Assembly: GCF_963921235.1 (NCBI RefSeq)
Contig: NC_086110.1
Coordinates: 9,734,001-9,798,000, forward strand
Direction of reading: 5' to 3'
Source of the DNA: Mobula hypostoma
Taxonomy: Eukaryota
Length of the DNA stretch: 64,000 nt
This document shows, in pieces, positions 1,621 to 42,000 of the stretch. The notes below the pieces were generated by a model that made no database searches, had not been told where the DNA came from, and was given only the letters and a program-made list of their open reading frames with translations. Position 1 is the first letter of the stretch. Each line of letters opens with the position of its first letter. Both the position numbers and the translations under genes were made by a program.

Positions 1621-4218
1621 TCGGAAGCATACACCACGAACATTTGTGATCAGAAAACCACAATCAGGTGTTTGATCAAGATCAATCAGGCGAAACAGGC
1701 TTCAAAGTGCATGAAAGGAAGGAAGAGGACCACTTTCCAGAGATGGACGCAGGTGTTTAAGAATCTCCATCCACTACAACACTTTCAGGAACGTACACCA
1801 GATCGGGACGTTTATCTGTCCCACCACACTCCACCGCCCAATAGCTCATAACAAATGACTAAAGAAGCAGGATATTCATGGTTTGTTGCCTCCTGGGTGC
1901 CAAGGTCCGGGATGTCTCTGACCGGGTGCACGACATCCTGGTACAAGTGGGAAAGCAACCAGAAGTCGTGATACATGTTGGCACCAACGACATAGGCAGG
2001 AAGAGGAATGAGGTCCTGAAGTGTGAGCTTCGGGAAATAGGCAGAAGGCTGAAAAACAGAACCTCAAATGTGGCGTTCTCAGGATTGCTGCCAGTGCTAC
2101 GTCATAGTGATGGTAAGAATTGGAGGAGATGGCAGTTGAATGCGTGGCTAAGGAGTTGGTGCAGGGGGCAGGGTTTTAGATTTTTGGACCATTGGGATCT
2201 CTTCTGGGGAAGGTGGGACCTGTAGAGATTGGATGGGTTGCACCTGAACTGGAGGGGGAGCAATATCCTTGCAGGTAGGTTTGCGAGCATGGTTTGGGAG
2301 GGTTTAAAGTAATTTGCAAGGGAATGGGATCCGGAGCGATAGGGTAGGGTGGTGAAAGAAATGCATGGAGTAAAGCCAGATCTAACATATAGAGAGGCTT
2401 TGAGGAAAGAGAAACTGAATAAAGCGTGTAAAGGTAGAAAGATCAAAGGGCTGAAGTGCGTGCAATTCAATGTAAGAAGCATCAGGAACAAAGGTGTTGA
2501 ACTGAGAGCTTGGATACATATATGGTATTGTGATGTCGTGGCCATTACAGAGACTTGGCTGCCACCAGAGCAGGAATGGATTCTGAATATTCCTGGGATT
2601 CTGTGCTTTAGAAGGGATGGGGGGGAGGGGAGGAGGGGTGGCATTACTGATCAGGGATACTATTACAGCTACAGAAAGGGTGGGTAATGTAGCATGATCC
2701 TCTTTTGAGTCAGTATGGGTGGAAGTCAGGAACAAGAAGGAAGCAGTTACTCTATTGGGAGTATTCTATAGGCCCCCTGGTAGCAGCAGAGATACCGAGG
2801 AGCAGATTGGGAGGCAGATTTTGGAAAAGTGCAAAAATAACATGGTTGTTATCATGGGTGACTTTAACTTCCCTAATATTGATTGGCACCTGATGAGTTC
2901 CAAGGGTTTGGACGGGGCAGAGTTTGATAAGTGTGTCCAGGACGGATTCCTGTCACAGTATGTTGACAGGCCGACTGGGGGAATGCCATACTAGATGTAG
3001 TAGTAGGTAACGAACCGGGTCCGGTCACAGATCTCTCAGTGGGCGAGCATCTGGGGGACAGTCCCTGGCCTTCAGCATTATCATGGAAAAGGATAGAATC
3101 AGAAAGGACAGGATTTTTTTTTAATTGTGGAAGGGCAAATTATGAGGCTATAAGGCTAGAAATTGTGGGTGTGAATTGGGATGATGTTTTTGCAGGGAAA
3201 TGTACTATGGACATGTGATCGATGTTTAGAGATCTGTATCAGGATGTTAGGGATAAAATTGTCCCGGTGAGGAAGAAAAAGAATGGTAGGGTGAAGGAAC
3301 CATGGGTGACAAGTGAGCTGGAAAATCTAGTCAGTTGGAAGAAGGCAGCATACATGAGGTAGCATACATAAGCAAGGATCAAATGGGTCTATAGAGGAAT
3401 ATAGGGTAGTAAGAAAGGAGCTTACGAAGGGCCTGAGAAGAGCAAGAAGGGGGCATGAGAAGGCCTTGGCGAGTAGGGTAAAGGAAAATCCCAAGGCATT
3501 CTTCAATTATGTGAAGAACAAAAGGATGGCAGGAGTGAATGCAGGACTGATTAGAGATAAAGGTGGGGAGATGTGCCTGGAGGCTCTGGACGTGAGCGAG
3601 GTCCTCAATGAATACTTCTCTTCGGTCTTCACCAATGAGAGGGAACTTGATGACGGTGAGGACAATATGAGTGAGGTTGATGTTCTGGAGCATGTTGATA
3701 TTAAGGGAGAGGAGGTGTTGGCGTTATTAAAATACATTAGGACAGATAAGTCACCGGGGCCTGAAGGAATATTCCCCAGACTGCTCCACGAGACGAAGGA
3801 AGAGATTGCTGAGAATCTGGCTCGGATCTTTATGTCCTCCTTGTCTATGGGAATGGTACCGGAGGATTGGAGGGAGGCGAATGTTGTTCCCTTGTTCAAA
3901 AAAGGTAGTAGGGAATGCCCGGGTAGTTATAGACCACTGAGGCTTACGTCTGTGGTGGGAAAGCTGATGAAGAAGATTCTTAGAGATAGGATCTCTGGGC
4001 ATTTAGAGAATCATGGTCTGATCAGGGACAGTCAGCATGGCTTTGTGAAGTGCAGAACGTGTCTAACAAGCCTGATAGAGTTCTTGGAGGAGGTGACCAG
4101 GCATATAGATGAGGGTTCTGCAGTGGATGTGATCTATATGGATTTTAGTAAGGCATTTGACAAGGTTCCACATGGTAGGCTTATTCAGAAAGTCAGAAGG
4201 CATGGGATCCAGAGACGT

Positions 4219-4618
4219 TGTCATGGTTCCGTTTGGTTGTTCCCCTCTAACGCTCCTTTCCCGCTGATTATGCCCTAATTAAAGCTACTAGAATTCCAAT
4301 TGCTGCTAGTTTACTTAATTACGGTACACCTGGTTTGTATCAGAGACTGTGAAATAAGTACGATGGCGTCACTACACAGGACGCCAGTTTGTTGGTCTAT
4401 TCTTGTTTGGTACTTCGTTCTCTCGTTCGCTTAGAACCGTTAGTTCTAGGATTAGTTCCAAGTTCTGCTCTAGTTTCAAGATAGTCCCTATAGATCCTGT
4501 CTCCTTGTCAAGATTCCTCCGGTTTGCTGTTCTACGTTCACGTCTACGCCAGCATCCCCAACTCAGTCGACGTGCCGGTGTCCTGCACTTGGGTTCTCCT
4601 CAATCGCCCCGTGCAACA
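4219..4618 (+). repeat. 5' LTR of chromovirus
   Basis: TGTCATGGTTCC...GTGCAACA; direct repeat of 7712-8111. Confidence 0.95.
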
Positions 4619-4665: not shown

Positions 4666-7600
4666 AAGCTCCAATAGTTCTTGGCTACCACTGGTTAAGC
4701 CGCCATAACCCTTACATTGATTGGTCTACCGGAAAGATAGCCAGCTGGGGTCGGTTTTGTCAGGCCACTTGTCTGCAGTCGGCCCTTTCCCCTGTAAAAA
4801 CTACCTCGACCTGACCTGCCGTTGAACCCCCTGACTTGTGCAGTGTTCCAGCGGAGTACCATGACCTGGGACAAGTGTTTAGTAAACAACGTGCCCTTTC
4901 CCTGCCTCCACACCGACCATACGATTGTGCTATTGACCTTCTCCCCGGAGCTCCTCTATCCACCATTCGGCTGTATGACTTGCCCCGGCCAGAGAGGGAA
5001 GCAATGGAGGGGTTACATCAGTGAATCTCTCGCGGCGGGTGTCATCCGACCCTCATCCTCCCCGGTGGGCGCAGTGTTCTTCTTTGTGGAGAAGAAGGAT
5101 GGTTCACTACGTCCCTGCATCGACTACCGCGACCTAAATCATATAACCATAAAGAACAAGTACCCACTGCCTCTGATAAGTTCTGCGTTCGAAGCACTTC
5201 ACGGAGCCACCATCTTCTCGAAGTTGGACCTACAAAGCGCCTACCATCTGGTCCGAATAATGGAGGGGGACGAGTGCAAGACGGCATTTAATACCTCTTT
5301 AGGCCACTTCGAGTACTTGGTCATGCCTTTTGGCCCCACCAATGCCCCCGCAGTTTTTTAAACCTTGATTAACGACGTACTAAGAAACTTTATTAAACGC
5401 TTTGTGTTTGTCTATCTGGATGACATCCTAATCTTTTCCAGCAGTCCCCAGCAACACGTTCATCATGTCCGTCAAATCCTGCAGACGCTGGGGGAGAGTA
5501 AATTATCGTAAAGGCGGAGAAGTGCGAATTCCACGTCCCTTCGGTCAGCTTCTTAAGTTATGTCATCGAGAGCGGACAGGTGAGAGCTGATCCCGAGAAG
5601 ATCCGGGCTGTGGCGGAGTGGCCGAAACCCACGGACCGCAAGCAACTCCAACGGTTCCTGGGGTTTGCGAACTTCTATAGCTGGTTCATCAGAAACTACA
5701 GTCAGGTGGCGGCTCCCCTGACCGGACTTACCTCGCCTGCCACACTTTTCCTTTGGAACTCCGAGGCAGACTCAGCATTCGCGGAACTAAAGAGGCGTTT
5801 CACGTCTGCTCCCGTTCTGAATCAACCGGACCCTCCTGTCAATTCATTGTGGAGTTTGACGCCTCCGATTCCGGGGTGGAAGCAGTACTGTCCCAACGTT
5901 CGGGCCCGGATCAGAAGCTACATTCCTCTGCCTTCTTCTCTCGCTGACTGTCTCCCGCTGTACGAAATTTCGACGTGGGGATGCGGGAGCTACTGGCGGT
6001 CAAACTGGCATTGGCAGAATGGAGACTCTGGTTGGAGACGGCTGAACACCCGTTCATCGTCTGGACAGACCATAAGAACCTTGAATATATCCAGACCGCC
6101 AAACATCTGAATTCTCGCCAGGCCCGTTGGGCTTTATTTTTTGGCCGGTTCAGGTTTACCCTCTCCTATCGTCAGGGGTCCAAGAACGGGAAGCCCGATG
6201 CTCTCTCCCGTCAATACGTTTCCGAGGAGGACCTTCCCAACCCCGAGACCATCCGTCCATCATCCTGTGTAATGGCTGCCCTCACCTGGGAGATCGAGTT
6301 CAGAGTCAAAGAGGCCCAACGGATTCAACCTGACACAGGCATCGGACCTCCCAATCACCTGGTTGTACCTGATTCTGTCCGATTGCAGGTTCTCCAGTGG
6401 GGGCACACATCTCGTTTCGCCTGCCACCCCGGAATCGATCGGACTCTGACTCTTCTGAAGAGACATTTCTGGTGGCCCACCATGGACGCCGACACCCGGT
6501 TCCCATGCCTCTGCATGTTCCGTCTGCGCCCGTGGAAGAGCTTCCCATCGGCCACCTGCGGGATTGCTTCGTCCCCTTCCTGTCCCTGGTCGTCCCTGGT
6601 CAAACATCGCTCTGATTTTCGTCACCGGGCTACCCGCTTCACGTGGAAACACTGCCGTACTAACTGTGGTGAACCATTTCTCCAAGTCGGTGCATTTTGT
6701 AGCCCTCCCTAAAATCCCTTCTGCGCAGGAGACCGCAGACCTTCTCGTCACCCACGTTTTCCGACTTCACGGAATCCCTTCGGATATTGTCTCCGACCGG
6801 ACACCTCAATTCATTTCATAAGTTTGGAGATCTTTTTGTCGAGCCCTTGGTGCCTCCTAGCCTATCGTCCGGGTTTCACCCACAGACCAACGGGCAAACG
6901 GAGCGGGTCAACCAGGAGCTGGAGGCGGCGCTACGTTGTATAACAGCCAACAACCCGTCTACATGGAGCAACCATCTCGCATGGGTAGTATACGCCCACA
7001 ACTCTCTGGTCAACAACGCGACTGGAAAATCTCCTTTTGAATGTTCTCTTGGTTATTCCCCCCCCCCCCCTTTGCTTCCCGCCCAGGAAGAAGAGATTGC
7101 GTTGCCATCAGTCCAGGCCCATATACACAGGTGCCAAAAAAACCGGGAAGACACACGCACGGCCCTGCTTCGCTATGCCAACCGTAACCGGAAAATTTCC
7201 GACCGCCATTGTCCTCTGCTCCTGAGTATCGACCTGGGCAGATGTTGTGGCTCTCGTCTAGAGACATTCCTCTGAAGAATCAGCCCAAGAAGCTCGCCCC
7301 CGCTTCCTGGGACACTTCGAGGTTAAGAGCATTATCGACCCCGCGGCAGTCCGGCTCAAACTACCCACGTCTCTGCGGATCCATCCTACATTTCACGTCT
7401 CCTAGTAAAAACCGGTTTCTGTCAGCCCCTTGTGCCCTCCGACCGAACCCCTTCTACCCTCCATCCCGCCCCCGAATCATCGACGACCATTCGGCGTACA
7501 CCGTCCGGCGGTTATTGGATGTCCGCCGTCGGGGCACGAGTCTCCAGTACCTAGTTGAATGGGAGGGATACTGCCCTGCGGAACGTTCCTGGATTCCCCG

Positions 7601-8111: not shown

Positions 8112-10753
8112 GACGTTTGGCCAGATTGATTCAGAATTGGCGTGCCTGAAGAAGGCAGAGGATCGCGGTGGAGGGAGTACATTCGGAATGGAGGGTTGTG
8201 ACTAGCGGTGTCCCACAAGGATCGGTTCTGGGACCTCTACTTTTCGGGATTTATATTAACGACCTGGATGTGGGGGTAGAAGGGTGGATTGGCAAGTTTG
8301 CAGACGACACAAAGGTTGGTGCTGTTGTAGGTAGTGTAGAGGATTGTCAAAGATTGCAGAGAGACACTGATAGGTTGCAGAAGTGGGCTGAGAAGTGGTA
8401 GATGGATTTCAACTCGGAGAAGAGTGAGGTGGTACACTTTGAAAGGACAAACTCCATGACAGAGTACAAAGTAAAGGGCAGGATACTTGGTAGTGTGGAG
8501 GAGCAGAGGGATCTGAGGGTACATGTCCACAGATCCCTGAAAGTTGCCTCACAGGTAGATAAGGTAGTTAAGAAAGCTTATGGGTTGTTAGCTTTCATAA
8601 ATCTAGGGTTAGGGTTTAAGAGTCGCGAGGTAATGATGCAGATGTATAAAACTCTGGTTCGGCCACACTTCGAGTACTGTGTCTAGTTCTGGTCCCCTCA
8701 CCACAGGAAGGATGTGGAAGCATTGGAAAGGGTACAGAGATTTGCCAGGATGATGCCTGGTTTCGAGAGTCTGGATTATGATCAGACATTAAGGGAGCTA
8801 GGGCTTTACTCTTTGGAGAGGAGGAGGATGAGAAGAGACCTGATAGAGGTATACAAGATATTAAGAGAAATAGACAGAGTGGATAGCCAGCGCCTCTTCC
8901 CCAGGGCACCACTGCTCAATACAAGGGGACATGTCTTTAAGGTAAGGGGTGGGAATTTCAAGGAGAATATTAGAAGAAGGTTTTTTACTCAGAGTGGTTG
9001 GTGCGTGGAATGCACTGCCTGAGTCAGTGGTGGAGGCAGACACACTAGTGAAATTTAAGAGACTACTAGATAGGTATATGGAGGAATTGAAGGTGGGGGG
9101 GGTATATGGGAGGCAGGGTTTGAGGGTCGGCACAACAATGTGGGCCGAATGGCCCGTACTGTGTTGTACTATTCTATGTTCTATGTTCTTATATTCCTCT
9201 CACTTTGCCGGAGTGTTCAGGTATTCTATCCTGACCTCCGTTAAATACCGAGTTTTTTTTTAACGAGTTCTAATGTTGAAAACGTTTCAGAAAATGAGAC
9301 TGTTCTTTAAAAAAAGGAACTGGTGAAAAAGCTGGAAATAGAGACAGAGAGTGGACATTTTTATGTTTATGTAAGGAGCATAAATTATGGCTATGGATAA
9401 AATGCACTGGATACCTCAATTTCAGTGAGTATAATTTCAATGCAGGTCTAAGGAGAAGAGGTACACACAGTACCTAGATTTTCTTTTTCTCAAGAAGGGG
9501 GAGATATAGTGGAAGGTAATAGTGTTCTTCCTATGTCATTGAGTTCACAACTCCCTCATGGCAAGAATTCACATACTATAACAGCAGGGTTATCAATAAA
9601 GTTCAGTTGAGTATCCTGCATGCTGGTATCCTAGTGTGCTCTGCAATATCCCGCAATAACGAACACACAGTGGGTACCTGAGACTGCCAAAACGTAGACA
9701 AAACTCCAATCAGTTGATTAGCACTCAATAATCAGTCAGTTATGCCGCCTGGGGCAGTTACTTTCTATGAGTTCAGCTTCTTGAAGGATGCCCTCTCGTC
9801 AGCCTTAGAGAATGAAATCTCAGGGTTGTTGAGAGCTGTGGGAATCTGTGAAGATGATTCCATATTCTGTCAGTCAAAGCGATCATAAAATGCATTGAGC
9901 TCATCTGGGAGGGCAACATCGTGATCACTGACAAACAAGAGAAAATCTGCAGATGCTGGAAATCAAAGCAATACACACAAATGCTGGAGGGAAGTTAGCA
10001 GGCCAAGCAGTATCTATAAGAAAGAGTCAAAAGACAGCGTTTCAGTCCGTGATCACTGTGGTGTTTTCCTTCATCCTCCGATGAGTTGTTGAACATTCCT
10101 AATCCACCAAACCGAAGTTCGGTCCATTCAGTGGACCGAGAGCTCCGTATCGGGGTGTCGGCAGTAAGACCTGTCTCAGTGAACTAGAGAAAGTAGCAAA
10201 CCCTCAATTCCCTACGACACAGCAATCTTGCTCTTGTGCCATGCGGTCCGATGATTATACACAGAACTGTACTCCAGACGACCATAAAATCGATATTGCG
10301 GTTAGATAGTTCAAAACTACATCTCTTAAATTGAAATATCAGACTGCAGATTGCGGCGATAGCACTTCAGAAAATGTATATGTTACTTAAGGTTTATTTT
10401 CACTTACTAGATGAAGAGATTTCCATTATTACTCGAGAGCCTTGATACATTCAAGGAAAAGTGGTACCCATAATTAATGCTCCATCCAGTGCCTTGAACA
10501 GTCATATTCCTCAATTATTGTAAGCTCTAGGGCATGTCATCGAGGGCTGCACTGCATTCGCCAGGTTACTTATAAGGGAAACGAGAGCTGTGCTACCAGG
10601 AATGAGTGACACATACATTGCTCCGGATGCCCTGCACCAGCAGGTTCTTCTTATGTCTTGGAAATATCTGCGTTCCTTGTCTAAACCCTATGGGTTTCTG
10701 TCCGACAGTGGGACTCAGCGTAAGTAATCAAAGGTTTCAGCGGCAATTGGTTA

Positions 10754-18311: not shown

Positions 18312-18442
18312 TCATGTTGAAAACAGAAGCTGCGCCAATTCTTTCCATCGCCGTAAATTCCACCAGATACAAGAATTCTCGAGAACGAAAAGGTGTTCGT
18401 GAGAAAACAGATGCATGGTCAACTGGGTATGGTCCTCTTCAT
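18312..18442 (-). CDS. Gene A (NKp30/NCR3-like Ig receptor) exon 5, terminal cytoplasmic exon
   Basis: Acceptor cattatatttcgttccAG, homologous to the exon 4 acceptor. The phase-1 frame is open: (N)EEDHTQLTMHLFSHEHLFVLENSCIWWNLRRWKELAQLLFST*. A phase-0 reading gives MKRTIPS*. Confidence 0.55.
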
Positions 18443-19400
18443 CTGGAACGAAATATAATGACACGATAATTCAGCACCATTTGCGGAATTGTTTACGCAA
18501 TGATTACAAATATACTTATCATAGTACCCAATGTGCCAGATCCCCAGAATCTCTTAAGCTAAAGAAACTAATGGACTAGTTTAAGCGCAACGTGACACGA
18601 TGGCACAATAGTTATCTGATCTATCACTATTCCAGTGACCGCGGTTCAATTATGATCTCAAGAGCTTCAACATACTCCGGGTGATCGTATCTGTTTCTCA
18701 AAGGTCCCCAGTGTCCTCCCATATATCAAAATGATGGTGTTAAATGAATGTTTTAAAACTGCATGACGGCTTAAAAAATTACAATGATGTTTCTGAATAC
18801 AAAAGAATAATTATAGCAGCTATTATTGGAAAATGCAAATGCACACATTGTATTTTCTACAATATTTACTATGTAACCACTGTTAGCTCATTAGAAGGTA
18901 TTCACTATGTAGCCATGACTTTTGACCTGTTCACTATTAATTCATGAAGAGAACTAGAATGAAATCAAATAGAAAGATAACGGTGGCGGGTAAGATGATG
19001 AAATATGTGGCAGTATGTCAATGCAAGGCTAATTAAGAAAAAACTGTGGTTAGGGATGAGAAGACATATGGTCCAAAAATGTACACTAGGACATAATTGA
19101 ATTGGGGTGTAAAACAATAGTGGAAAGTCAAGAGCGGATGTATTGATGATATGTAATCACAGGCCGATTGGATATGATAATGTAACTAAGATAGGAGAAT
19201 TGCTATAAAAAATGCTATGTACAAGGTTCGACGTGCAGTCAGCATCTAGCTTTCTGATTGTCTCAGCTTTGATTTGCAAATTAAAGTTTAAAACTACTTC
19301 AAAGATTTTCTGCGTCACCTTGGCGTTTGTGAGAAACCACGACACTATCAACACAAGAGATAATTTAGTTTACGTCATTTAAGTACATATGATGAAACGC

Positions 19401-19401
19401 A

Positions 19402-19436
<35 letters not shown>
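19401..19436. repeat. (AAAT)n microsatellite
   Basis: Directly visible. Confidence 0.98.
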
Positions 19437-19598
19437 GTTCCAAGTAGACGTCTTAACACGATTTGATTGGTTGTTAGCGACAGGAAGAATAAGCAGACTA
19501 CGTAAGCACAAACTGTTGTAAAAAGACTCTCGTTAATTCTGTCCAGATCAGATCGTCCAGAATATACGGCGTTATATGTACGCATGAACAAACCTCAC

Positions 19599-19631
19599 TA
19601 TGATTCGCTTTCGTAAAGCATTCCTGGTTAC
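19599..19631 (-). CDS. Gene A exon 4, short cytoplasmic exon
   Basis: Acceptor tcattatatttcgttccAG; 33 nt, phase 1-1, encoding (G)NQECFTKANH; donor GTGAGG. An alternative donor GTTTGT lies 5 nt further. Confidence 0.55.
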
Positions 19632-19829
19632 CTGGAACGAAATATAATGACATAAAAATGTAGCACCATTCGTAAAATTGTTAACGAAATGATCGTAAAG
19701 ATACTTATAGTAGCACACAAATGTCAGCATCTGCAGAATCTCTTGTATTGGCTTTTGCCCAACGTGTCACAGGAGCGCAATAGTTATTCCACCGCAACCA
19801 CTTCCAGCGATCTCAGGTCCGTTGTGATC

Positions 19830-20070
19830 TCAGATGTTTCCACATTCTCCGAGAAATCGCATGTGTTTCTCTAAAGTATCCCGGGAACCTCCCTCATCCA
19901 TAGTAATAGAAGTTAAGTGAACTGGCAACTCTAAATTTCCTGAAGTATGTGTTATTGGCAGAGAATCGTGGGCGTACCTTGTTACAGGGGAATAAATTGG
20001 AGCTTCAAATCCTGTGAAAGCAGGCACAAAGCACAGTAGGCCAAATGTCCTCCCTGTCTATGAGTAGCTA
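19830..20070 (-). repeat. Degenerate SINE-like repeat in gene A intron 3
   Basis: Resembles the common fish/shark SINE body (gcatgtgtttctc...ccgggaacctccc...caatttagagttgccagttcac). A related copy lies on the + strand at ~18600-18730. Confidence 0.45.
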
Positions 20071-20377
20071 CATATTTTGCAAAAAAAAATTCACGATTTC
20101 TTTGCTTACACCAATCGCATTTTCTTGTTCCGGAAAATAGGGTATTCGTTTGGCATGCGAACGAAATATATGGCGAGAGAATTGGAAAAGATAATTAACC
20201 ACGTCATAGTCTGGCCGAGAATTGAATGCTTGACTTCTGCTAAATATCTGAAATACGTGACCCAGACATTGCAGTTAAGAGAAACCCCAGTGATGATTGT
20301 GCTGTCCTGGAAAAGACGGGGAAATGTGTTTTTTTTTGTCGTGCTTGTGGATTTGGGAAATGTTCTGTAAATCATAC

Positions 20378-20491
20378 CCTTTCTTTCCTGCTTTCGGCAC
20401 AGCGTCCCAGTGACGATCATTAGCAGTAGAATCGCCGGTCCGCCCATCGCACAACGGAGAAACCAAATGGAAGGAGAGTTGCCAGAGGAAC
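20378..20491 (-). CDS. Gene A exon 3, transmembrane exon with intramembrane Arg
   Basis: Acceptor ttctttcaaacttccAG, donor G|GTATGA; 114 nt, phase 1-1, open. Encodes (G)SSGNSPSIWFLRCAMGGPAILLLMIVTGTLCRKQERK: a hydrophobic span with R near its N-terminal end, then a basic stop-transfer segment. Confidence 0.85.
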
Positions 20492-20879
20492 CTGGAAGTT
20501 TGAAAGAATATACGTTGTGGAAGCTGAGAAGTAAATATATAACTCTCTTTTCTGAGAGGAGATGAAGGGTCGCTGCTGGTGCTCGTGCTAGTGGTGGCGT
20601 TGGGGTGTGTGAATAATAGCGGATAGGACAACACAACAGAACATAAAAATATAAGAGAAAATTAGTAAATAAAATACACAGCGCTCTGTTTATCAAAATA
20701 AACCCCGTAGTTATTCTGATATTGGACAATTAAAGTGTGTTTAATTGATCTCAGGCTCCATGTGACTATGGCTGATGGATTGCACATGATAAGAGGATTG
20801 TAGCAGCAGTGTCTGAAACAATTTTCCCAATTTTCCCAGTGCAGGATTGACACAATATATAGATAAGCCTGCAAGAGGA

Positions 20880-22085
20880 GAGGCTGTACTTGATCTGGCA
20901 CTGGAAAATTAACCTGGTCAGGTGTCAGATCTCGCAGTGGGAGAGCATTTTGGAGATAGTGATCACAATTCTATCTCCTTTACCATAGCATTGGAGAGGG
21001 ATAGGAGCAGACAAGTTAGGAAAGCGTTTAATAGGTGTAAGGGGAAATATGCAGCTATCAGGGAGGAACTTGAAAGCAGAAACTGAGAACGGATGTTTTC
21101 AGGAAAATGTACGGAAGAACTGTGGCAAATGTTCACGGGATATTTACGTGGAGAGAACTGGAGTTGAGATACTTTATATGTCTCAAATGGAAATCTGATG
21201 GAAACTAGAAACGGAACGGAAACCCCTGCAAACAGTTCAACTGAAAGGTACGGAATCACTGGCAAAGAATGATTTTTTTTCCAAATGGAACACAGAAGAA
21301 ATATCAATACACGTGGGTGGACATGCAAATACAAAGTACATTAAATGTAAAAATTGGTTGCAGAGCAGTGTTTTAATTAATGCCTGTCTTGCAACCCACA
21401 GAACTCGATATTATTTAAAATCCCTTTAAATTCTAGACTAGTGAGTCATACTTCAGTGTTAGGTAAGTTGATGAAGATCCTGAGAGACAGGATTTATGAA
21501 CATTTGGAGAGGCATAAAATGATTAGGAATAGTCAGCATGGCTTTGTCAAAGGCAGGTCTTATGAGCCTGATTGAATTTTTTGAGGATGTGACTAAACAC
21601 GTTGAACCATAGATGCAGTGTATATGGGTTTCAGCAAGACATTTGATAAAGTACCCCATGCAAGGCTTATTTAGAAAGTAAGGAGGATTATTCTGAATGG
21701 AAGTCGGTGAGCAGTGGTGTGCTGCAGGGATCTGTTCTGGGACACCTACTCTTCGTGATGTTTATAAATGATGTGGATGAGGAAGTGGAGGGATAGGTTA
21801 GTAAATTTTCTGCTGACACAAAGGTTGGGGGTGTTGTGGACAGTGTGGAGGGCTGTCAGAGGATACGGGGGACATTGATAGGATGAAAACTGGGCTGAGA
21901 AGTGGCAGATGGAGTTCAACCCAGATTAGTGTGAGGTGGTTCATTTTGGTAGGTCAAATATGATGGCAGAATATAGCGTTCATGGTAAGACTCTTGGCAG
22001 TGTGGAGGATCAGAGAGATCTTAGAGTCCCAGTCCACAGGGCACTCAAAGCTGCTACACAGGTTGACTCTGTGGTTCAGAAGGTA
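20880..22085 (+). mobile_element. CR1 ORF2 fragments in gene A intron 2 (20880-21160 and 21432-22085)
   Basis: AVLDL.L.N.PGQVSDLAVGEHFGDSDHNSISF; RNSQHGFVKGRS; DAVYMGFSKTFDKVPH; VLQGSVLG; FSADTKVG. Antisense to gene A. Confidence 0.9.
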
Positions 22086-22148
22086 TAATTAGCGTGTTAC
22101 ATTCTATGTACTTTATAGATAATATGTTCTCCAGCTACTTTAGCTCAC

Positions 22149-22469
22149 CGTGAACCTTTAGAAGTGATCCGGTTCCATTTCTTGCAGGCGATTCTTTGCG
22201 GGTCAGTGAACACAGAAACAGTCCTGAATCTTGGACCATTACATTTTGCAACTCAAAGTACCAAGTTCTTTTACCTCTCCGACCGGAACGCTTTCTGCTG
22301 CCGGTGCTAGTCCGTTGGTATTCATTCTCGCCCTGTTTCCACCAGTAGACTTTTACCCAGGATTCATCCTGAGAAATGGGAAATACGCAGTAGAACGTGA
22401 CGTTCTCTCCTTTGGATACCACCGCTTCTTTGGGCGATTGAGATACATTGAACGAAGTTTGATTCGCAG
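22149..22469 (-). CDS. Gene A exon 2, germline-joined VJ-type Ig V-set domain
   Basis: Acceptor ctttcctttttAG, donor G|GTGAGC; 321 nt, phase 1-1, open. Encodes ANQTSFNVSQSPKEAVVSKGENVTFYC...VKVYWWKQ...FELQNVMVQDSGLFLC...NGTGSLLKVH: B-strand Cys, C-strand Trp, DSGxxxC and a J-like GxGxxLxV in one exon. Confidence 0.92.
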
Positions 22470-22612
22470 CTAAAAAGGAAAGGTTAATTTTAGTTAAATT
22501 GAATTTTTCATAAATGTAACCTACAGCTGATTCACAGTTAGCTTCAATATTGTGTAATCTAATCGGACATTGATTGATAAATTAAAACACGCAGAAATGA
22601 ATAAAGCTTTAC

Positions 22613-22652
22613 CTATGTAAATGATCCCATTGACTGCCAGAAAGAGAAACAT
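22613..22652 (-). CDS. Gene A exon 1, leader peptide
   Basis: ATG at 22652-22650, MFLFLAVNGIIYI, donor G|GTAAAG (phase 1), then a 143-bp intron to the V exon. Joins in frame (G+CT = Ala). Confidence 0.8.
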
Positions 22653-22699
22653 ACTTGCTCACATACTGCCTAACAGATTCAATGAGTCTGTTGATGTGC

Positions 22700-24153: not shown

Positions 24154-25011
24154 TGCTCAAGGAGATCTGTTTTTTGTGAGAATGATGTAATGGTCTTTTG
24201 GAGGTCACCTGATGTGATTTTCCCGCCAATGTGAGGTCACGTGATGACATGTGCCCCGTGACTATATAAGGGTCGACTCAGGTGACGCAGTAGGTTTTTG
24301 AGTTTGTACATTTCCAGGTAGAACGTGTTGTGCCTCCGTTTCTGTTGCGTGTTTGTTTTTGTGACGTAGTTTCATTTTTAAAATGGTTGTACGTTCTGTT
24401 GAAAGATTCCATATTACTTGGACTGGAAATTTGTGGCTGGAAGTGCCAATTCCGACAGTTTTGAAGGGAGAGTGAAGAATTCATCGAAGTGAAGAATCGA
24501 GAGAAGTCGGCATCATTTGGCAGTTTAATAAAGGATCGACCTTATTGAGTCTTCGTTGGAGAGAACCTGCATTGAGATAACTCTTGCAATAGCGCAATGA
24601 GTTCATGCAAAAAGGCTCTCGCTCTCTAAAAGGAATTTAAGGTCAGTCGATTTAAACTGTTTATTTTCAGCATCGGGAATCCTGTGGACAGAACTGGCAG
24701 TAAAGGTGCGTAGGTGAAGAAATCTTTCTCCAGAGAAGTCTCTCCTAATTGATGCGTAAAACTGTTGGACTTTTGAAGTTATCACTTTAAGAACTATATC
24801 TGACTGTATCACTTTAAGAACTGTTTCCGCATTAAACGCTTTAAGAACCAGAGCCGAGTGGCGAGCTGGTGAACAACTGCGTACCTGTTAACCTCCGGTT
24901 AAAGTTTTCCTTTGTTTTTTTTTCCGTATCGTTTATACGTGTTTAATAAATGTTTGGTTGTTTTTATATAACCTGTCTCGATTAATATTCATTGTTGCCT
25001 GTTACGTAACA
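24154..25011 (+). mobile_element. Solo LTR of the same family as the 39070-44290 element
   Basis: Colinear with 39077-39939 and 43464-44290. TATA-like TATATAA at 24263-24269, AATAAA at 24945-24950, ends GTTACGTAACA. The extreme 5' end is degraded and no clear TSD was seen. Confidence 0.92.
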
Positions 25012-27371: not shown

Positions 27372-28813
27372 TTAATAATCCCTCAGACCAGGCTCCAATT
27401 TAGCAAACTTCATAGTGGCCAAAAACACTGATGAATTGCGATCAATGTAAACTCTCATTTGGTTTTGTCCCGGACCACAATAACAAGGGTTGTCCCATTC
27501 CGACTTAGTTTTCTCTCGCAAGAACTTAGTAGGAGGGGGAGGGGTAGTGACCGCAGAGTTATTGCAAAACTTCCTACAGTACTCCACCATCTCCAAGAAC
27601 CTTCTGAGGGCCCTCTTGTCTGTCGGGGTTGGGAGGTCAGCGATAGCCTGCACTGTAGCTTGCATCGCTGCCAGCTGCCCCTGTGTCACCACAATTCCCA
27701 GGTAAGTGACCTTCATGCGGCCGAACTCATTTTTTTCAAGGTTCACTATCAAGCTGGCTTCAGACAGGCGTATTAAATTGCCAATACACACCTCTGTGTT
27801 CGTCAGCCCTTTAGTCACTGAATTACTCATTCTATATGGATGTTGCTCACTAGGCTGACCTATTGAAACAGACACCACCCAACGTCCCAGTTCTTTGCAT
27901 CGCCTCAGGACAATCAAACACACGGGTGCGAGTCATTTAATTACTTCTCCTAAAGAGTCGCTTTGTTCGGGGATTAAGGGAGAGACCTTATCAGCAGACC
28001 TGGCCAAAACAATAGCCTTCTCCCATCTGGTCAATACCATACTCATCTTTTCAAAATGGTTTTTTTCTCTTATCGGGGGGACCCTAGCTTCATTGATTTC
28101 CGTGCTAACACCGACTAGGTTTGTTAGCATATCAAAAGCCTGTGACCATCTCAGTTCGCATCGGTCATAATAACATCCTTCCCCCTGGGCAGCTGGTAAA
28201 CCTCTTTCATGGTTCCACCAACTGTTCCCTCCAGTACTGCAAAATGTCCACCGGGGGGTACCTTGTGGGCCAGGTTAAAAACCTCATCCCCATAACTCTT
28301 TTGCACCACCCCCCATTCCTCATCTGCGGGCACGGTACTTGGTCTACCTTGCTTCCTTAGCACTTCCTCCTCCACACAATAGCCTATTTGTTCCCTTGTT
28401 AAGTCTGTGTCAGAGAGAGCTGTCTCTGCCAAAACCATCAGCCCCTCGTCTCGCTCCTGCGTCTGCACAAATTCTTTCCTGGCTACTGCTATGTCTGTCT
28501 CAGCTCCCTCACTACCTCTTGTCTCACTACACTCCTTCTTTTCATTTTCTACCACCTTCTCGTACAAGGTTGGCAGAAAGGTCTCAGCTAAATTTACTAC
28601 CGCAGCCCCATGATGAACCTGTGAGTCCATGGGCGGGGCATCAATGCTGGCAGGCTGACCTGTCAATCTCACGACTGGGAACACGATTCCCCCGGCGACG
28701 TCATTACCGAGCAAGACTTCCACGCCTTTCATCGGTAATTCGGACCTCAACCCGATCGTGACTAGTCCAGAGACCAGGTTGCTTTGTAAGTGTATCTGGT
28801 GCAAAGGGACCAA
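27372..28813 (-). pseudogene. pol remnants of the Gmr1-type element (protease end, integrase N-terminus, RT thumb/connection)
   Basis: LLGNDVAGG (protease); LAHKVPPGGHF (integrase HHCC start); VNLEKNEFG..VTYLG...PTPTDKRALRRFL (RT C-terminus). No YxDD motif remains. Confidence 0.85.
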
Positions 28814-30281
28814 CTCTGTCCCTTCCCCAACACCTTTGACCTTTACCTCCCCAGTCTGGGTCTGAGCTAAACTCTAATGCAATCTTCAGTATTAGTGACT
28901 GACACGCTCCCGTGTCTCTCCAGATCCGCACTGGAACTGGTTTTAACCCCTCCTTCACTGACACTAATCCGGCCGAGATAAACTTCTCGTGCCCTTCCTG
29001 AACTTTGGTAGACCTGTCCTTCCCTAGCAGTTCATTTACCAGCTCGATACAGCCAGTCAAAATCGCTGTTTTTCCTTTTCCCGTCTCCTTCTTTGGGGCA
29101 AAGCACCTGGACGCAAAGTGTCCGACTTTCCCACAATTATAACAGACGACCCCAGGAGACTTCCTACCAGACTGCTCCCGGTCTACCTTATCCTTCTCAC
29201 TAGTCCCCGGCTTACTTTCTGACTTTTCCGGCGGACTCTCCCCGCCATCCTGACTACCCTTCTGGTAGCCTTTACTCGGGGCAAACTTCATTTTATGCGT
29301 TAACGCATACTCATCCGCTAACTTAGCAGCTGCGGCTAACGTGGCTGCCTCTTTCTCATCTAGGTAGGGTCTCATACCTTCAGGGACACAACCTTTAAAC
29401 TGCTCAATCAGGATCAGATGTAGCAGTCTGTCATAATCCCCCTCTACCCCCTTCGAAGCGCACCAACGCTCACAATATGTCTGCATCTCACGGGCAAACT
29501 CTGAATACGTGCTCCTCGCATTCCAGAACCTCTGCCGGTATGCCTCCGGGACCAACTCATAAATCCTGAGGATGGCCTCTTTCACCACCTCATACCTCTG
29601 GGCATCTTCCGCGGACAAAGCTGAGTAAGCTTCTTGGGCTTTCCCTTTCAGTACACTCTGAAGCAAAACAACCCACTTATCCCTTGGCCAGTCCTGACTT
29701 ATAGCCACTTTTTCGAAATGGAGAAAGTACCGATCCACGTTGGTATCGTCAAATGGGGGAACCAGCCTAACCTCCTGGGTCGCCCGGAACCCTCCACCTT
29801 GGTTCGGCATGAGCCCCTGCTCTGCCCTTATCTTTAACTTCTCCAGCTCGAATTCCCTTTCCCTCTTCTTCTCGCTCTCTCTCTCTTCTCGCTCCCATTG
29901 CCTCTCTTTCTCTTTATCCAACTGTCTCTCCCTCTCTCTCTCTTGCCTTTCTAACTCTCTCTCTTTCTCCCGCCTTTCTAACTGCTTCTCTTCTTGTTCT
30001 AACTGCCGTACCCGGAACTCGTGCTCGAGTCTCAGTTTTTCAAGCTGTACCTGTACCGCGTCTCCGGCAGGTTTTTCAATAGACACCACCCCCAGCTCGC
30101 CTTGGGGAAACACACCTTTAGATACATAGTGCTCTACGATAGCTCTGTATATCTCCTCTCTCCTCATTGTCGACTTCCCCTTAGCAAGATTCAACAGTTT
30201 GGCCACAGCTACCAATTCCGATTTCCTGGCATCCTCTAATGCTTCCAAGGTTGGCGCCTTTATAAATTCCTCAGCCTCCAT
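28704..30281 (-). CDS. Retrotransposon Gag (coiled-coil, SCAN-like capsid, CCHC knuckle) running into the protease start
   Basis: 525-aa ORF: WVVLLQSVLKGKAQEAY...YELVPEAYRQRF, CYNCGKVGHFASRC, RDTGACQSLIL. A frameshift at ~28860 ends the pol reading. Confidence 0.9.
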   Translation of the reverse strand: MEAEEFIKAPTLEALEDARKSELVAVAKLLNLAKGKSTMRREEIYRAIVEHYVSKGVFPQGELGVVSIEKPAGDAVQVQLEKLRLEHEFRVRQLEQEEKQLERREKERELERQERERERQLDKEKERQWEREERESEKKREREFELEKLKIRAEQGLMPNQGGGFRATQEVRLVPPFDDTNVDRYFLHFEKVAISQDWPRDKWVVLLQSVLKGKAQEAYSALSAEDAQRYEVVKEAILRIYELVPEAYRQRFWNARSTYSEFAREMQTYCERWCASKGVEGDYDRLLHLILIEQFKGCVPEGMRPYLDEKEAATLAAAAKLADEYALTHKMKFAPSKGYQKGSQDGGESPPEKSESKPGTSEKDKVDREQSGRKSPGVVCYNCGKVGHFASRCFAPKKETGKGKTAILTGCIELVNELLGKDRSTKVQEGHEKFISAGLVSVKEGLKPVPVRIWRDTGACQSLILKIALEFSSDPDWGGKGQRCWGRDRVGPFAPDTLTKQPGLWTSHDRVEVRITDERRGSLAR

Positions 30282-31387: not shown

Positions 31388-34300
31388 CATAAGACCATAA
31401 GACAACGGAGCAGAAGTAGGCCATTCGGCCCATCGAGTCTGCTCCGCCATTTTATCATGAGCTGATCCATTTTATCCTATTTAGTCCCACCGCCCTGCCT
31501 TCTCACCATAACCTTTGATGCCCTGGCTACTCAGATACCTATCAATCTCTGCCTTAAATACGCCCAATGACTTGGCCTCCACTGCTGCCCGTGGCAACAA
31601 ATTCCATAGATTCACCACCCTCTGACTAAAAAAATTTCTTCGCATTTCTGTTCTGAAAGGGCGCCCTTCAATCCTGAAGTCATGCCCTCTCGTACTAGAC
31701 TCCCCCATCATGGGAAACAACTTTGCCACATCCACTCTGTCCATGCCTTTTAACATTTGAAATGTTTCTATGAGGTCTCCCCTCATTCTTCTAAACTCCA
31801 AGGAATACAGTCCAAGAGCGGACAAACATTCCTCATATGTTAACCCTCTCATTCTCTGAATCATTCTAGTGAATCTTCTCTGTACCCTCTCCAACGTCAG
31901 CACATCCTTTCTTAAATAAGGAGACCAAAACTGCCCACAGTACTCCAAGTGAGGTCTCACCAGCACCTTATGGTGCCTCAACATCACATCCCTGCTCCTG
32001 TACTCTATTCCTCTAGAAATGAATGCCAACATTGCATTCGCCTTCTTCACTACTGACTCAACCTGGAGGTTAACTTTAAGGGAATCCTGTACGAGGACTC
32101 CCGTTGCATCTCAGAACTTTGAATTCTTTCCCCATTTAAATAATAGTCTGCCCGTTTATTTTTTCTGCCAAAGTGCATAACCATACACTTTCCAACATTG
32201 TACTTCATTTGCCACTTCTCTGCCCATTCTTCCAATCTATCCAAGTCTCTCTGCAGACTCCCCATTTCCTCAGCACTACCGGCCCCTCCACCTATCTTTG
32301 TATCGTCAGCAAACTTAGCCACAAAGCCATCTATTCCATAATCCAGATCGTTGATTTACAATGTAAATAGAAGCGGCCCCAACACTGATCCCTGTGGAAC
32401 ACCACTGGTAACAGGCAGCCAACCAGAATAGGATCCCTTTATTCCCACTCTGTTTCCTGCCAATCAGCCAACGCTCTATCCACGTAGGTAACTTTCCCGT
32501 AATTCCATGGGCTCTTATCTTGTTAAGTAAGTAGCCTCATGTGTGGCACCTTGTGAAACGCCTTCTGAAAATTCAAATATACAACATCCACTGCATCTCC
32601 CTTGTCTAGCCTACTGGTAATTTCCTCAAAAAATTGTAATAGGTTTGTCAGGCAGGATTTTCCTTTAAGGAATCCATGCTGAGTTCTGCCTATCTTGTCA
32701 TATGCCTCCAGGTACTCTGTAAACTCATCCTTGACAATTGACTCCAACAACTTCCCAACCACCGACGTCAAGCTAACAGGTCTATAATTTCCTTTTTGCT
32801 TCCTTGCCCCCTTCTTAAATAGCGGAGTGACATTTGCAATCTTCCAGTCTTCCGGAACTATGCCAGAATCTATCGACTTTTGAAAGATCATCGCTAATGC
32901 CTCCGCAATCTCCACAGCTACTTCCTTCAGAACACGAGGGTGCATTCCATCTGGTCCAGGAGATTTATCTCCCTTTAGACTACTCAGCTTCCTGAGTACT
33001 TTCTCTGTCGTAATTGTGACTGCGCACACTTCTCTTCCCTGCCACCCTTGAGTGTCCGGTATCCTGCTGTCTTCCTCAGTGAAGACTGATGCAAAATACT
33101 TGTTCAGTTCCTCTGCCATCTCCTCATCTCCCATTACAATTTCTCCAGTATCATTTTCTATCAGACCTATATCTACTCTCACCTGTCTTTTACTCTTTAT
33201 ATACTTGAAAAAGCTTTTAGTATCCTCTTTGATATTATTTGCTAGTTTCCTTTCATAGTTAATCTTTTCTCTCTTAATGACCTTCTTGGTTTCCTTTTGT
33301 AAAGTTTTAAAAACTTCCCAATCCTCTGTCTTCCCACTAATTTTTGCTTCCTTGTGTGCCGTCTCCTTTCCTTTAACTTTGGCTTTGACTTCTCTTGTCA
33401 ACCACGGTTGCATCCTTTTTCCACTCGAAAATTTCTTTTTTTTTTGGAATATACCTGTCTTGCACATTCCTCATTTTTCACATAAACTCCAGCCACTGCT
33501 ACTCTGCCGTCTTTCCTGCCAGTGTCTCTTTCCAGTCAACTTTGGCCAGTTCCTCTCTCATGCCACTGTAATTTCCTTTACTCCGCTGAAACACCGACAC
33601 ATCAGATTTTGGCTTCTCTTCTTCTAATTTCACAGTGAACTCAATCATGTTATGATCACTGCCTCCTAAGGGTTCCTTCACCTCAATCTCTCCAATCACC
33701 TCCGGTTCATTACACAATACCTAATCCAGTACAGCCGATCCCCTAGTGGGCTCAACAACAAGCTGCTCTAAAAAGCCATCTCGCAGACATTCTACAAATT
33801 CTCTCTCTTGAGATCCAGTGCCGACCTGATTTTTCCAATCTACTCGCATCTTAAAATCCCCCACAATTATCCTAACACTGCCCTTCTGACAAGCCTTTTC
33901 TATTTCCAGTTGTAATTTGTAGTCCACATCCCTGCAGCCGTTTGGAGGCCTATAAATAACTGCCATCAGGGTCTTTTTACCCCTGCTATTCCTTAGCTCA
34001 ACCCATAAAGATTCTGCACCTTCCGATCCTATATCACCTCTTTCTAACGATTTAATATCATTTCTTACCAATAAAGCCACACCTTCCCCTCTGCCTACCT
34101 TCCTATCCTTCCGATACACCGTGTATCCTTGGACGTTCAGCTCCCAGAGACATGCATCCTTTAGCCAGGTCTCAGTGATGGCCACAATATCATACCTGTC
34201 AATCTGTAGCTGTACAACAAGATCATCCAGTTTATTCCTTATGCTGCGTGCATTTAAGTACAACACCTTAAGACCAGTATTTGATACTTTTTGCTTTGAT

Positions 34301-39069: not shown

Positions 39070-42000
39070 TGCTACATGCTCAAGGAGATCTGTTTCTTTT
39101 GTGAGAATGATGTAATGGTCTTTTGGAGGTCACCTGATGTGATTTTCCTGCCGATGTGAGGTCACGTGATGACATGTGCCCCCGTGACTATATAAGGGTC
39201 GACCCAGGTGATGCAGTTAGTTTTTGAGTTTGTAGATTTCCAGGTAGAACGTGTTGTGCCTCCGTTTCTGTTGCGTGTTTGTTTTTGTGACGCAGTTTCA
39301 TTTTTAAAATGGAAGGTGCATTATCTTAATAGATATTGTATTATTGAACTGAAAATTTGTGGCTGGAAGTGCCAATTTACTCAATTCCGACAGTTTTGAA
39401 GGGAGAGTGAAGAATTCATTGAAGTGAAGGATCGAGAGAAGTCAGCATCGTGTGGCAGTTTAATAAAGAATCGACCTTATTGAGTCCTCGTTGGAGAGAA
39501 TCTGCATCGAGATATCTCTTGCAAAAGGGCAATGAGTTCATGCAAAAAGGTGCTGTCTCTAAAAGGAATTTAAGGTCAGTTGATTTAAACTGTTTACTTT
39601 CGGCATCGGGAATCCTGTGGACAGAACCAGCAGTAAAGGTGCGTCTGTGGAGAAATCTTTCTCCAGAGAAGTCTCTCCCAATTGAACGTGTAAAACTGTT
39701 GGACTTTCGAAGTTATCGCTTTAAGAACTATATCTGACTGTATCGATTTAAGAACTTGTTTTTGCATTTAACGCTTTAAGAACCAGAGCCGAGTGGAGTT
39801 GGTGAACGGCTGCATACCTGTTAACCTCCGGTTAAAGTTTTCCTTTGTTTTTTTTTCCCTTATCATTTATACATGTTTAATAAATGTTTGGTTGTTTTTA
39901 TAAAACCTGTCTCGATTCATTGTTGCCGGTTATGTAACATAATTTGTGGGGGCTCGTGGGATAAGTTCCGATTTTGAGTTTATATTCTGGTAATTGCCAT
40001 TTTGATTTGGAAAAGGGGAATACCCAATTTTTTTTGGTTTGATTGGTGTGTGTGTTGTATTCGGCAACAATGGATATTGATGGTTTTTGGAAGGCGCCTG
40101 ACTCGGGATTTTTAGAGACTGCAAGAAAACCTGTGGTATTGGAGATTGCTAAGAAGCTGGATATTAAAGGGATTATGAGAAATTCCACCAAGGCTTTCAT
40201 ACAAAGAAAAATTGCTGAACATTGTATTAATTTGGAATTGTTTGATCAGGAGGTGTTAGATAAGATTCCACTGAGTAATCTGGAAATGCAGTTGCATCTT
40301 GAACAGTTAAAGTTTGAAACATTTAAAGTGGAAATGGCCGAAAGAGAGGCTAATAAAAAAAGGGAATTCGAGGAAAGAGAAGCCCTTAAAAAAAAAAGGA
40401 ATTTGAAGAAAGAAAAACTGAAAACCAGAGGAAATTCGAGCTAGAGATGCAGAAATTAAAGTTCGGGAGTCAGTCTTCTGGTTCTACGAAACAATTTATT
40501 GCTAGTCATGAGGTTGTTTTGGCTCCTCCATTTAATGAAGCTGATGTGGATGCATATTTCCAACATTTCAAAACAGTTGCTCTGAGTCTAAAGTGGCCAA
40601 AAGACCAATGGCCAGTGATGTTACAAAGTGTAATTGAAGGCAAGGCACAACAAGTTTATACAGCTTTAAATGCTGAGCAAGCACTGGATTATGATATTGT
40701 TAAAGAGAATATATTAAAGGCATACGAGATGGTTCCGGAAGCATATAGATAAAGATTTAGAAGTTTAAAGAAATTGGTGGAAAAAACTTATGTGGAATTT
40801 GCCTATGAGAAATCTGTGTTTTGAGAGATGGGTTTCCTCAAAAAATGTGAATGGGGAGTATAATAAATTGAAGGAGTTGATTTTGCAGGAGGAATTTAAA
40901 AGAAGCATTCCTGTTGAAGTGAGAACATACTTAAATGAACGGGACACTGCTACATTGCAGGAGATTGCTAAATTGGCTGATGAGTATGTTATAATTCACA
41001 AGAATAAATTTTCTCCAGGTAAATTTTTTAAAAGGAAAACTAGCACAGAGAGTCAAGGTAAATCAGACATTAAATTTGAAGTTAGTGAGAAAAGTAAGGA
41101 TGAAGGGAGACATGTGAATGAAAGACATTTTGGTATTATTTGTAATTATCGTAAGAAACCTGGACATGTAGTGGCTAATTGCTTCTGATTGAAAGGGAAA
41201 GAAGTGACCCCAGATGCTTGTGTGCAGCATATTGGAAAACCTGTAAAACCACAGGATTTAGAAAATATTAATGAGGATATGTCAGAGTCTGACCAAGTTA
41301 AGAAGGGATATGAAGCTTTTATAACAGAAGGATTTGTATCCTTGAAAGAAGGATCCAATGCAGTACCGATAAGGATACTTAGAGATACTGGAGCTTCACA
41401 ATCACTAATATTAGACAGTGTGCTAAGGTTTAGTGATGAGTCTGACATTGGTGAGGTAAATTATATAAGAGGAGTAGGGAGTGATCTTATGCCAGTACAT
41501 TTACACAGAGTAAATTTAAGGTCAGGATTTGTTACAGGGATTGTTAAAGTAGGACTACAATCCAGTTTACCTATGAATGATGTTTCTCTTTTGTTAGGGA
41601 ATGATTTAGCAGGTGGACAAGTTTTTCCTGAAGTGCATTTGACAATAAATTCAAATCCTGAGGAACCACAGAGGGATTCTAACACAGATTCTTCCTGTGT
41701 TGTAACAAGAGCTATGGCTAAAAAGACTGATGTAAAGGATGTGGTTGTTACCCACAACAGTTCAAATCAAGATTTGAATTTTGAGGATGTATCAGAAACT
41801 TTCTTACCTTCCTTATTTGGTCAGGATTTTGGTGGTAAGTCTGATCAGGAAGATTTGTCTTTATCTCGGAAGGAGATGATAGCAGAGCAGGGTAGGGATC
41901 CTGAGATAGTTAAATTAAAAGAACAAGCTCTTCCAGATAGTGAAATTGGAAAAGTACCAGTTGGATATTATTTTGAAAAGGGGATATTAATGAGAAAGTG

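Follow-up and report, generated by a model that had tools for sequence, protein, structure and literature searches.

The 64,000-nt window of the devil ray Mobula hypostoma analysed here (contig NC_086110.1, positions 9,734,001 to 9,798,000 of the forward strand) carries on its minus strand a receptor locus, gene A, that is real and unannotated and rests on a core observation far beyond chance. Sequence comparison places it in the elasmobranch VJ-C1 paired-receptor family, as an activating-type member that is hard-wired to encode a single variable (V) domain, its C1-set exon having been lost from a V-C1 ancestor. On balance, gene A is probably a decaying copy in this birth-and-death family, most likely silent or barely translated, and from its sequence we infer a loss of function. 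An earlier note on this DNA had described an apparently intact NKp30/NCR3-like receptor gene of five exons (40+321+114+33+131 = 639 nt, GT-AG throughout) translating to 212 amino acids (aa). These exon sums, boundaries and translation are correct, and exons 1 to 3 are genuine, encoding the leader, a VJ-type V domain and a stalk and transmembrane (TM) segment with an arginine. Window coordinates are 1-based, and feature positions are collected in Table 1.

Family membership was established with a HMMER search over 1.84 billion representatives, which returned 143 matches. The best of them was P0001 of Hypanus sabinus (291 aa, E-value 8.5e-61, V domain 92% identical), which RefSeq names 'tapasin-related protein-like', and a word-index search with P0001 led in turn to P0148 of Mobula hypostoma itself (360 aa), named 'tyrosine-protein phosphatase non-receptor type substrate 1-like' and encoded outside this window. 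The close relatives of gene A are all organized as leader-V-C1-TM-tail. Sharks, rays and chimaeras have many members of the VJ-C1 family, which go under a variety of automatic names (SIRPalpha-like, SIRPbeta-like, tapasin-related-like, NCR3-ligand-1-like, PD-L1-like and MHC class II-like). A word-index search with the V domain alone gave no match at 58-185 aa, and a search of a protein atlas recovered generic V-set clusters only.

The V domain encoded by exon 2 matches Pfam V-set (E-value 5e-8) and shows the expected landmarks, namely Cys27, Trp42, Cys86 and, at the end of the exon, the J-like G-x-G-x-x-L-x-V in the form NGTGSLLKV, a motif common to many other VJ genes (PMC11599192). It is identical to P0148 at 100/105 positions (95%) and to P0001 at 97/105 (92%). 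Family signature stretches run along the domain (NVTFYC, YWWK.GEN, QDSG.Y.C and NGTGS.L.V); all six invariant family columns (Q10, P12, C27, W42, C86 and G98) are kept in gene A, and one of the eight near-invariant columns is altered (Y84 to F).

The genes of two stingrays, Hypanus sabinus (XP_059849417/19/20) and Hemitrygon akajei (XP_072926702), are the likely orthologues of gene A as judged from sequence. They share with it the leader, the V domain (92%), the LRCAMG and CRKQ.RK stretches of the TM exon, the mini-exon GN.ECFT.AN.SE and both alternative ends (…SEVCSCVHI.PY… and MKRT..S*, the asterisk marking a stop). However, they begin with MSASV and have, after V and before TM, a C1-set exon that is missing from gene A, which in turn has a stop at codon 2 and six TM-exon changes of its own. 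P0148 has the same leader and the same exon plan as far as the TM segment but differs from gene A in its C1 domain, in a Gly that replaces the Arg of the TM segment and in a long tail with LSYATL, an immunoreceptor tyrosine-based inhibitory motif (ITIM), and TEYAEL, an immunoreceptor tyrosine-based switch motif (ITSM), and so represents the inhibitory partner type. The same species thus holds a receptor with a 95% identical V domain and the opposite type of signalling (Gly in TM, ITIM plus ITSM). In addition, a V-only receptor of the same subfamily is found in Narcine bancroftii (XP_069755609, 218 aa, 56% identical in V). Its TM and mini-exons are homologous to those of gene A and its stalk is short as well; unlike gene A it has an uncharged TM segment and an ITIM (VHYVAI), and is of inhibitory type. 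A comparable organization is seen in mammalian SIRPalpha and SIRPbeta, where a VJ-type V domain is followed by C1-set domain(s), the inhibitory member bears ITIMs and the activating member combines a charged TM segment with a short tail. Note however that SIRPs differ from gene A in that their C1 domains number two and their charged residue is a Lys, which pairs with DAP12, and that the SIRP link of the elasmobranch family consists in the automatic RefSeq names given to many of its members.

The assignment to the activating type comes from the TM exon, which is 27/37 identical to that of Hemitrygon P0145 and 25/37 to that of Hypanus P0001. The alignment of TM exons contains a column occupied by Arg in gene A, both stingray counterparts, Hypanus P0150, catshark P0004 and Heterodontus P0116, and all Arg-column receptors aligned have short tails; Gly or Ser takes this position in the ITIM-tailed P0148, P0154, Narcine P0003 and Callorhinchus P0022. 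Since the Arg column tracks short tails across species, we may fairly infer that gene A is of activating type. The earlier description of an activating receptor therefore stands as far as the Arg in the TM segment and the short tail are concerned, while the working state of the receptor is doubtful. By hydropathy, the membrane span measures either 24 residues, with Arg133 (in the context IWFLRCAMGG) 4-5 residues in from its outer end, or 19 residues, with Arg133 falling just beyond it. A TM Arg is conventionally read as pairing with an adaptor that carries an ITAM (immunoreceptor tyrosine-based activation motif; PMC6514059), and by analogy such pairing is presumed at Arg133. The V exon is nearer to the same-species inhibitory gene (95%) than to the stingray activating genes (92%), and the TM and tail exons reverse this relation (68-73% to the stingray activating genes against 59% to the same-species inhibitory gene). 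Such a mosaic would be expected of paired receptors with homogenised ectodomains, or of slow evolution of the V domain.

The single-V layout reported earlier is confirmed insofar as the locus has no C1 exon, but it is a derived loss, the stingray counterparts being V-C1. Searches of the intron between the V and TM exons with tblastn, using P0001, P0148, P0154, P0150 and P0145, gave no C1 match even at an E-value of 5 and a word size of 2; V was located at 22469-22149, and the next match was the TM exon at 20491-20378. The only C1 exon in the window is frameshifted and belongs to a neighbouring gene, gene B. Intron 2 is instead made up mostly of high-copy repeat (fragments at about 20818-21279 and 21431-22100), over which contig depth reaches 10^3-10^6 in the four RNA runs described below and of which diverged copies occur elsewhere in the window (3927-4200 and 8181-8559). 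Since the V, C1 and TM exons are all of phase 1, loss of C1 leaves the frame intact and V splices to TM. Genes with a V domain only are found in Narcine and Callorhinchus, with equally short stalks, and C1-skipping isoforms are predicted by RefSeq in Mobula birostris and Heterodontus, so that gene A is a variant within the family and not an outsider to it.

One sign of damage is found at the start of the gene. In tblastn comparisons gene A reads M*ASMFLFLAV against MSSSMFLFLAV of P0148 and MSASVFLFLAV of P0001; that is, it has ATG TGA GCA AGT ATG where relatives begin MSSSM, MSASV or MSSM. The start codon proposed earlier is consequently the fifth codon of the family (Met in P0148, Val in P0001) and lies 6 nt past the ATG-TGA pair; as a minimal upstream frame, this pair could lower the level of translation. 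Changes unique to gene A are also found at conserved positions. Four of them, N2, F84 (in the YxC tyrosine corner), E92 and S93, fall in the V domain where four close relatives agree; codon 84 reads TTT and codons 92-93 read GAA TCG (within 22189-22218). In the TM exon, N4, P6, F10, P18, T27 and L30 (6/37 residues) are altered where five relatives agree or nearly so, with two new prolines among them. No protein of the gene A locus was found among 5.8 billion clusters (58-185 aa and 160-509 aa searched), a collection in which other Mobula hypostoma RefSeq models are present.

Transcription was examined in four runs assembled as Logan contigs, two from organism A (X1 and X2) and two from organism B (X4 and X5). 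Contigs of both organisms on the V exon stop exactly at its borders, which indicates that they derive from spliced RNA; an apparent 3-nt overhang (22470-22472) is explained by exon 1 and intron 1 both ending in TAG. The differences in the organism-A contigs translate to F84Y, E92G and S93L, that is, to the residues of P0148, and the variants of organism B add V78I and L83M, which are of the stingray type. One organism-A contig seems to run from exon 2 onto exon 1 (depth 1.46 in the bin 22512-22665). The X1 contig continues for 63 letters beyond 22149, and since depth on exon 3 is zero in X1 it does not represent gene A spliced from V to TM. In organism B, one contig aligns with 20378-20493 and is preceded by 331 letters that are absent from the window, as a C1 exon would be. 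The joints listed between contig segments were filled by repeats, and none leading straight from V to TM could be made out among them. Exons 3-5 had no depth in the organism-A runs, and none of the runs examined yielded contigs with the V variants of gene A itself, the variants seen being those of the paralogue or stingray-like. The splicing proposed earlier is thus borne out in part: contigs that terminate at either border of exon 2 and at the exon 3 acceptor show that these sites are used in close relatives, but no transcript of gene A was seen in the four runs.

Together, these points make the earlier description of gene A as apparently intact doubtful: the family start codon is followed by a stop, C1 is missing, conserved residues have changed, and neither a protein model nor a transcript of its own was found. 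The favoured reading would have an activating-type member of the family, recognizable by its TM Arg, its mini-exon GNQECFTKANHSE and its terminal MKRTIPS*, and with a V exon nearly identical to that of an ITIM/ITSM-tailed receptor of the same species, lose its C1 exon while keeping the frame, acquire a stop right after the family start codon and gather changes at otherwise conserved residues. The copy would now be decaying in a transposon-rich stretch beside a dead V-C1 gene. If still made, its product (178 aa, or 202 aa on read-through) would hold the V domain near the membrane and could signal through an ITAM adaptor at Arg133.

A number of observations weigh against decay. All exons are open and all splice sites canonical; neither of the cysteines of the V domain has been lost, nor its Trp or J motif, and an AlphaFold model built from a 24-sequence family alignment is confident (predicted local distance difference test, pLDDT, 87.8); the terminal stop has the same place as in stingrays; the family normally includes V-only forms; and translation could begin at the Met of the fifth codon. 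A pseudogene is not proved by absence from a protein set, and the missing transcripts are weak evidence, since the tissue of the runs is unstated and the Logan contigs have a depth of 3-5, at which rare variants are dropped. These points leave room for a working V-only activating receptor, a possibility to be taken seriously though not the one we would expect. Translation would start at the Met at 22652, the 178-aa product would reach the surface with an FcRgamma/CD3zeta/DAP12-type adaptor bound at Arg133, and its ligand would be shared with P0148, the two forming an activating/inhibitory pair whose activating arm has shed its C1 spacer. The open frame with its canonical splice sites, the confident V model, the Arg column that tracks short tails across species, the V domain identical to P0148 at 100/105 positions, the conserved terminal MKRTIPS* and the V-only genes and isoforms annotated in relatives, with stalks equally short, all agree with such a receptor. 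However, it would have to be translated from a start 6 nt downstream of ATG-TGA, tolerate two new prolines in the stalk/TM exon and the lost Tyr of the tyrosine corner, and be produced from a locus for which there is no protein model and, in the organism-A runs, neither a contig with its own variants nor any on exons 3-5; its adaptor pairing, moreover, is argued by analogy. We consequently favour decay of the copy, as stated at the outset.

Comparison with stingrays also revises the 3' end. The exon 4 donor (19599) and exon 5 frame proposed earlier yield a 43-aa tail without any homologue, and this exon 4 ends 5 nt short of the homologue-supported donor (19594/19593). Hypanus isoform X3 (P0144) ends ...ANRSE-MKRTVST* and Hemitrygon P0145 ends ...ANHSE-MKRTIST*, and gene A reads the equivalent ...ANHSE-MKRTIPS* only with the donor GAG/gtttgt at 19594/19593, exon 5 in phase 0 and the stop at 18421-18419. 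Hypanus isoforms X1 and X2 instead read through the donor proposed earlier and both end in …SEVCSCVHIAPYNLVIQ* (also written …ANRSEVCSCVHIAPYNLVIQ*); over this read-through stretch they are 20/25 identical to the window. The comparison supports a corrected product of 178 aa, or of 202 aa by read-through, and not one of 212 aa, whose tail is out of frame. That the 212-aa product is nonetheless the true one, with donor ATA/gtgagg at 19599 and exon 5 in phase 1 through 18312, seems to us highly improbable. GTGAGG does match the donor consensus better than GTTTGT, and no stop interrupts the frame over 131 nt, but the tail has no homologue, the two stingray models favour the other junction and stop at the same codon, the extra tail (18312-18418) has no depth in any of the four runs, and the length of its frame has another explanation, given below. 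The claim that the tail lacks a Tyr motif is correct for the revised models as well: the supported tail, …ANHSEMKRTIPS*, has none, and read-through adds a single Tyr that forms neither an ITIM nor an ITSM.

NKp30 is a receptor with one VJ-type V domain, a short stalk, a short tail and, in its TM segment, an Arg through which it pairs with CD3zeta/FcRgamma (PMC6514059), and is counted among the non-rearranging VJ genes (PMC10751288, PMC11599192). The likeness of gene A to this layout is real in its single VJ-type V domain, its stalk of about 8 residues, its Arg near the outer TM end and its short tail, but it does not extend to any specific affinity, and the claimed NKp30/NCR3 identity is not upheld, as no sequence, profile or fold search had NKp30 among its best-ranked matches. 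It was not in the best 60 PDB sequence matches of the V domain, which were led by skate and shark VNAR and by the beta chain of the T-cell receptor (TCR), nor in the best 60 PDB matches of the 24-sequence profile, a listing mostly of multi-immunoglobulin (Ig) proteins and so uninformative on NKp30. It was likewise missing from the best 30 Swiss-Prot fold matches (among them TCR alpha, Ig kappa, CD79b, TMIGD2, CD8 beta and PD-1) and from the best 50 fold matches among 48,161 PDB representatives, where a skate VNAR scored Z 14.1, tied with many others. Structure prediction, suggested earlier as a check of NKp30 likeness, consequently speaks for no special relation: the fold matches are generic V and I-set domains, tied with one another, and NKp30 is not listed among them. 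The family profile search reached elasmobranch VJ-C1 receptors only, none of them named NCR3.

The evolutionary history of the two layouts also differs. The single-V state of NKp30 is old, and that of gene A results from a recent loss of an exon from a V-C1 gene; because the stingray counterparts are V-C1, the NKp30-like layout is both convergent and recent. We therefore give very little credence to gene A being a ray orthologue or direct paralogue of NKp30/NCR3, that is, a single-V activating natural killer (NK) receptor linked to the major histocompatibility complex (MHC) and binding a B7H6 homologue. Such a relation would account for the single VJ-type V domain, the short stalk, the Arg near the outer TM end and the short tail, but NKp30 is in none of the best-ranked PDB, profile, Swiss-Prot or PDB fold matches, none of the proteins recovered by the family profile bears the name NCR3, C1 is present in the orthologues of two stingrays, which makes the single-V state recent, and the window contains only retroelements and a V-C1 pseudogene, with no MHC marker genes. 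By analogy, NKp30 works in the way that gene A would if it were expressed.

The terminal exon of gene A preserves what may be traces of how its short tail came about. Just beyond the supported stop codon lies, in inverted orientation, a putative relic of the first cytoplasmic tyrosine-motif exon of the inhibitory paralogues, found with tblastn at E-values of 0.2 (P0148) and 0.17 (P0154). Its local score is 56, whereas each query, shuffled 60 times and compared with the entire window, reached at most 50-52. The exon 5 frame proposed earlier is long because it runs antisense to this relic coding exon. In front of exon 5, the end of the intron that precedes exon 4 is duplicated in tandem together with its acceptor. 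The likeness extends over some 250 nt (18433-18690 against 19622-19880, minus strand) at 74-75% identity with a 17-nt indel, and the last 20 intron bases are identical between the copies. This arrangement suggests that the short tail arose by duplication and inversion in an ITIM-type ancestor. In a more speculative extension, which we put forward tentatively and think rather unlikely, the acceptor copy joined to the inverted motif exon, with a tail that therefore ends after seven codons (MKRTIPS*), would be the footprint of an inhibitory-to-activating switch. Since the same terminal exon is present in two stingrays, the rearrangement would then predate the split between devil rays and stingrays and would have founded the activating lineage, and the later loss of C1 would have recreated the NKp30-like V-TM(Arg) layout.

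The Hemitrygon akajei RefSeq model P0145 (453 aa) is peculiar in its own right. It includes another V exon, translated in the wrong frame: residues 105-169 correspond to window 22148-22469, and residues 105-142 are 38/38 identical to the V exon of gene A in another frame, so that stingray and devil ray share 114 nt of V exon without a difference (or 113, as the Leu codon at the start is degenerate at its first base), the AAT CAA (N Q) codons among them. Window 6182-6274, which is retroelement integrase-like, is matched by residues 75-105. The model has a chimaeric appearance, and two tandem V exons may be present at the stingray locus.

The surroundings of gene A are dominated by retroelements (Table 1), whose open reading frames (ORFs) are of gag-like (SCAN plus zinc knuckle), reverse transcriptase, RNase H, integrase, long interspersed nuclear element (LINE) endonuclease and zf-RVT types. 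Gene B is a dead V-C1 gene (a pseudogene) by its sequence. A blastn comparison of gene A with the rest of the window recovered repeats only and no homology to gene B. One repeat is present in three copies (89% and 78% identity), at 24154-24500 upstream of gene A, at 39077-39435 and at 43464-43780 near gene B, which are possibly long terminal repeats. Intron 4 of gene A holds a (TTTA)n-type microsatellite (window 19394-19443).

Table 1. Features of gene A and its surroundings in the window.
Feature	Position	Strand	Description
Start-stop pair ATG TGA	22664-22659	-	At family start codon; tblastn with P0148 and P0001
Exon 1	22652-22613	-	40 nt; split leader MFLFLAVNGIIYI + 1 nt; donor gtaaag
Exon 2	22469-22149	-	321 nt; VJ-type V domain, 107 codons, phase 1-1
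Intron 2	22148-20492	-	1657 nt; site of the C1-set exon in relatives
Exon 3	20491-20378	-	114 nt; stalk GSSGNSPS, TM IWFLRCAMGGPAILLLMIVTGTLC with Arg133, stop-transfer RKQERK
Intron segment and acceptor upstream of exon 4, partner copy of duplicate	19622-19744	-	Repeat search and alignment
Exon 4, homologue-supported	19631-19594	-	38 nt; GNQECFTKANHSE; donor GAG/gtttgt
Exon 4, read-through end	19593-19498	-	…SEVCSCVHITPYIL…; stop TAG 19500-19498; product 202 aa
Duplicate of exon 4-preceding intron segment and acceptor	18433-18555	-	Repeat search; 74% identity, spacing 1189
Exon 5, supported frame	18442-18419	-	ATG AAG AGG ACC ATA CCC AGT TGA = MKRTIPS*; acceptor ttccag
Remainder of exon 5 as first proposed	18418-18312	-	Open in the frame first proposed; past the supported stop
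Putative inverted relic of first cytoplasmic tyrosine-motif exon	18320-18406	+	KTEAAPILSIAVNSTRYKNSRERKGVREK vs KTGAAAAYYAAVDFKRFKHTPERKSHREK of P0148; Tyr lost
Gene B, C1 exon	44851-44569	-	59-72% identical to family C1; two frames, break at about 44672-44664
Retroelement ORF	3466-4278	+	
Retroelement ORF	5975-6712	+	
Retroelement ORF	28704-30281	-	
Retroelement ORF	32523-33467	-	
Retroelement ORF	41189-42739	+	
Retroelement ORF	51276-52274	-	
Retroelement ORF	53443-55158	-	

Overall, these results provide a corrected model (178 or 202 aa, not 212) for a locus without annotation, and indicate that an NKp30-like layout in a ray can arise secondarily, by loss of an exon from a V-C1 gene. Layout alone is consequently no basis for calling NCR3 homologues in cartilaginous fish. 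Gene A also illustrates the turnover of its family, in which near-identical V exons are found in activating and inhibitory members of one species, tails appear to be remodelled by duplication and inversion, and copies decay among transposons. If the inverted relic is shared with stingrays, it would constitute a rare structural record of a switch from an inhibitory to an activating receptor.

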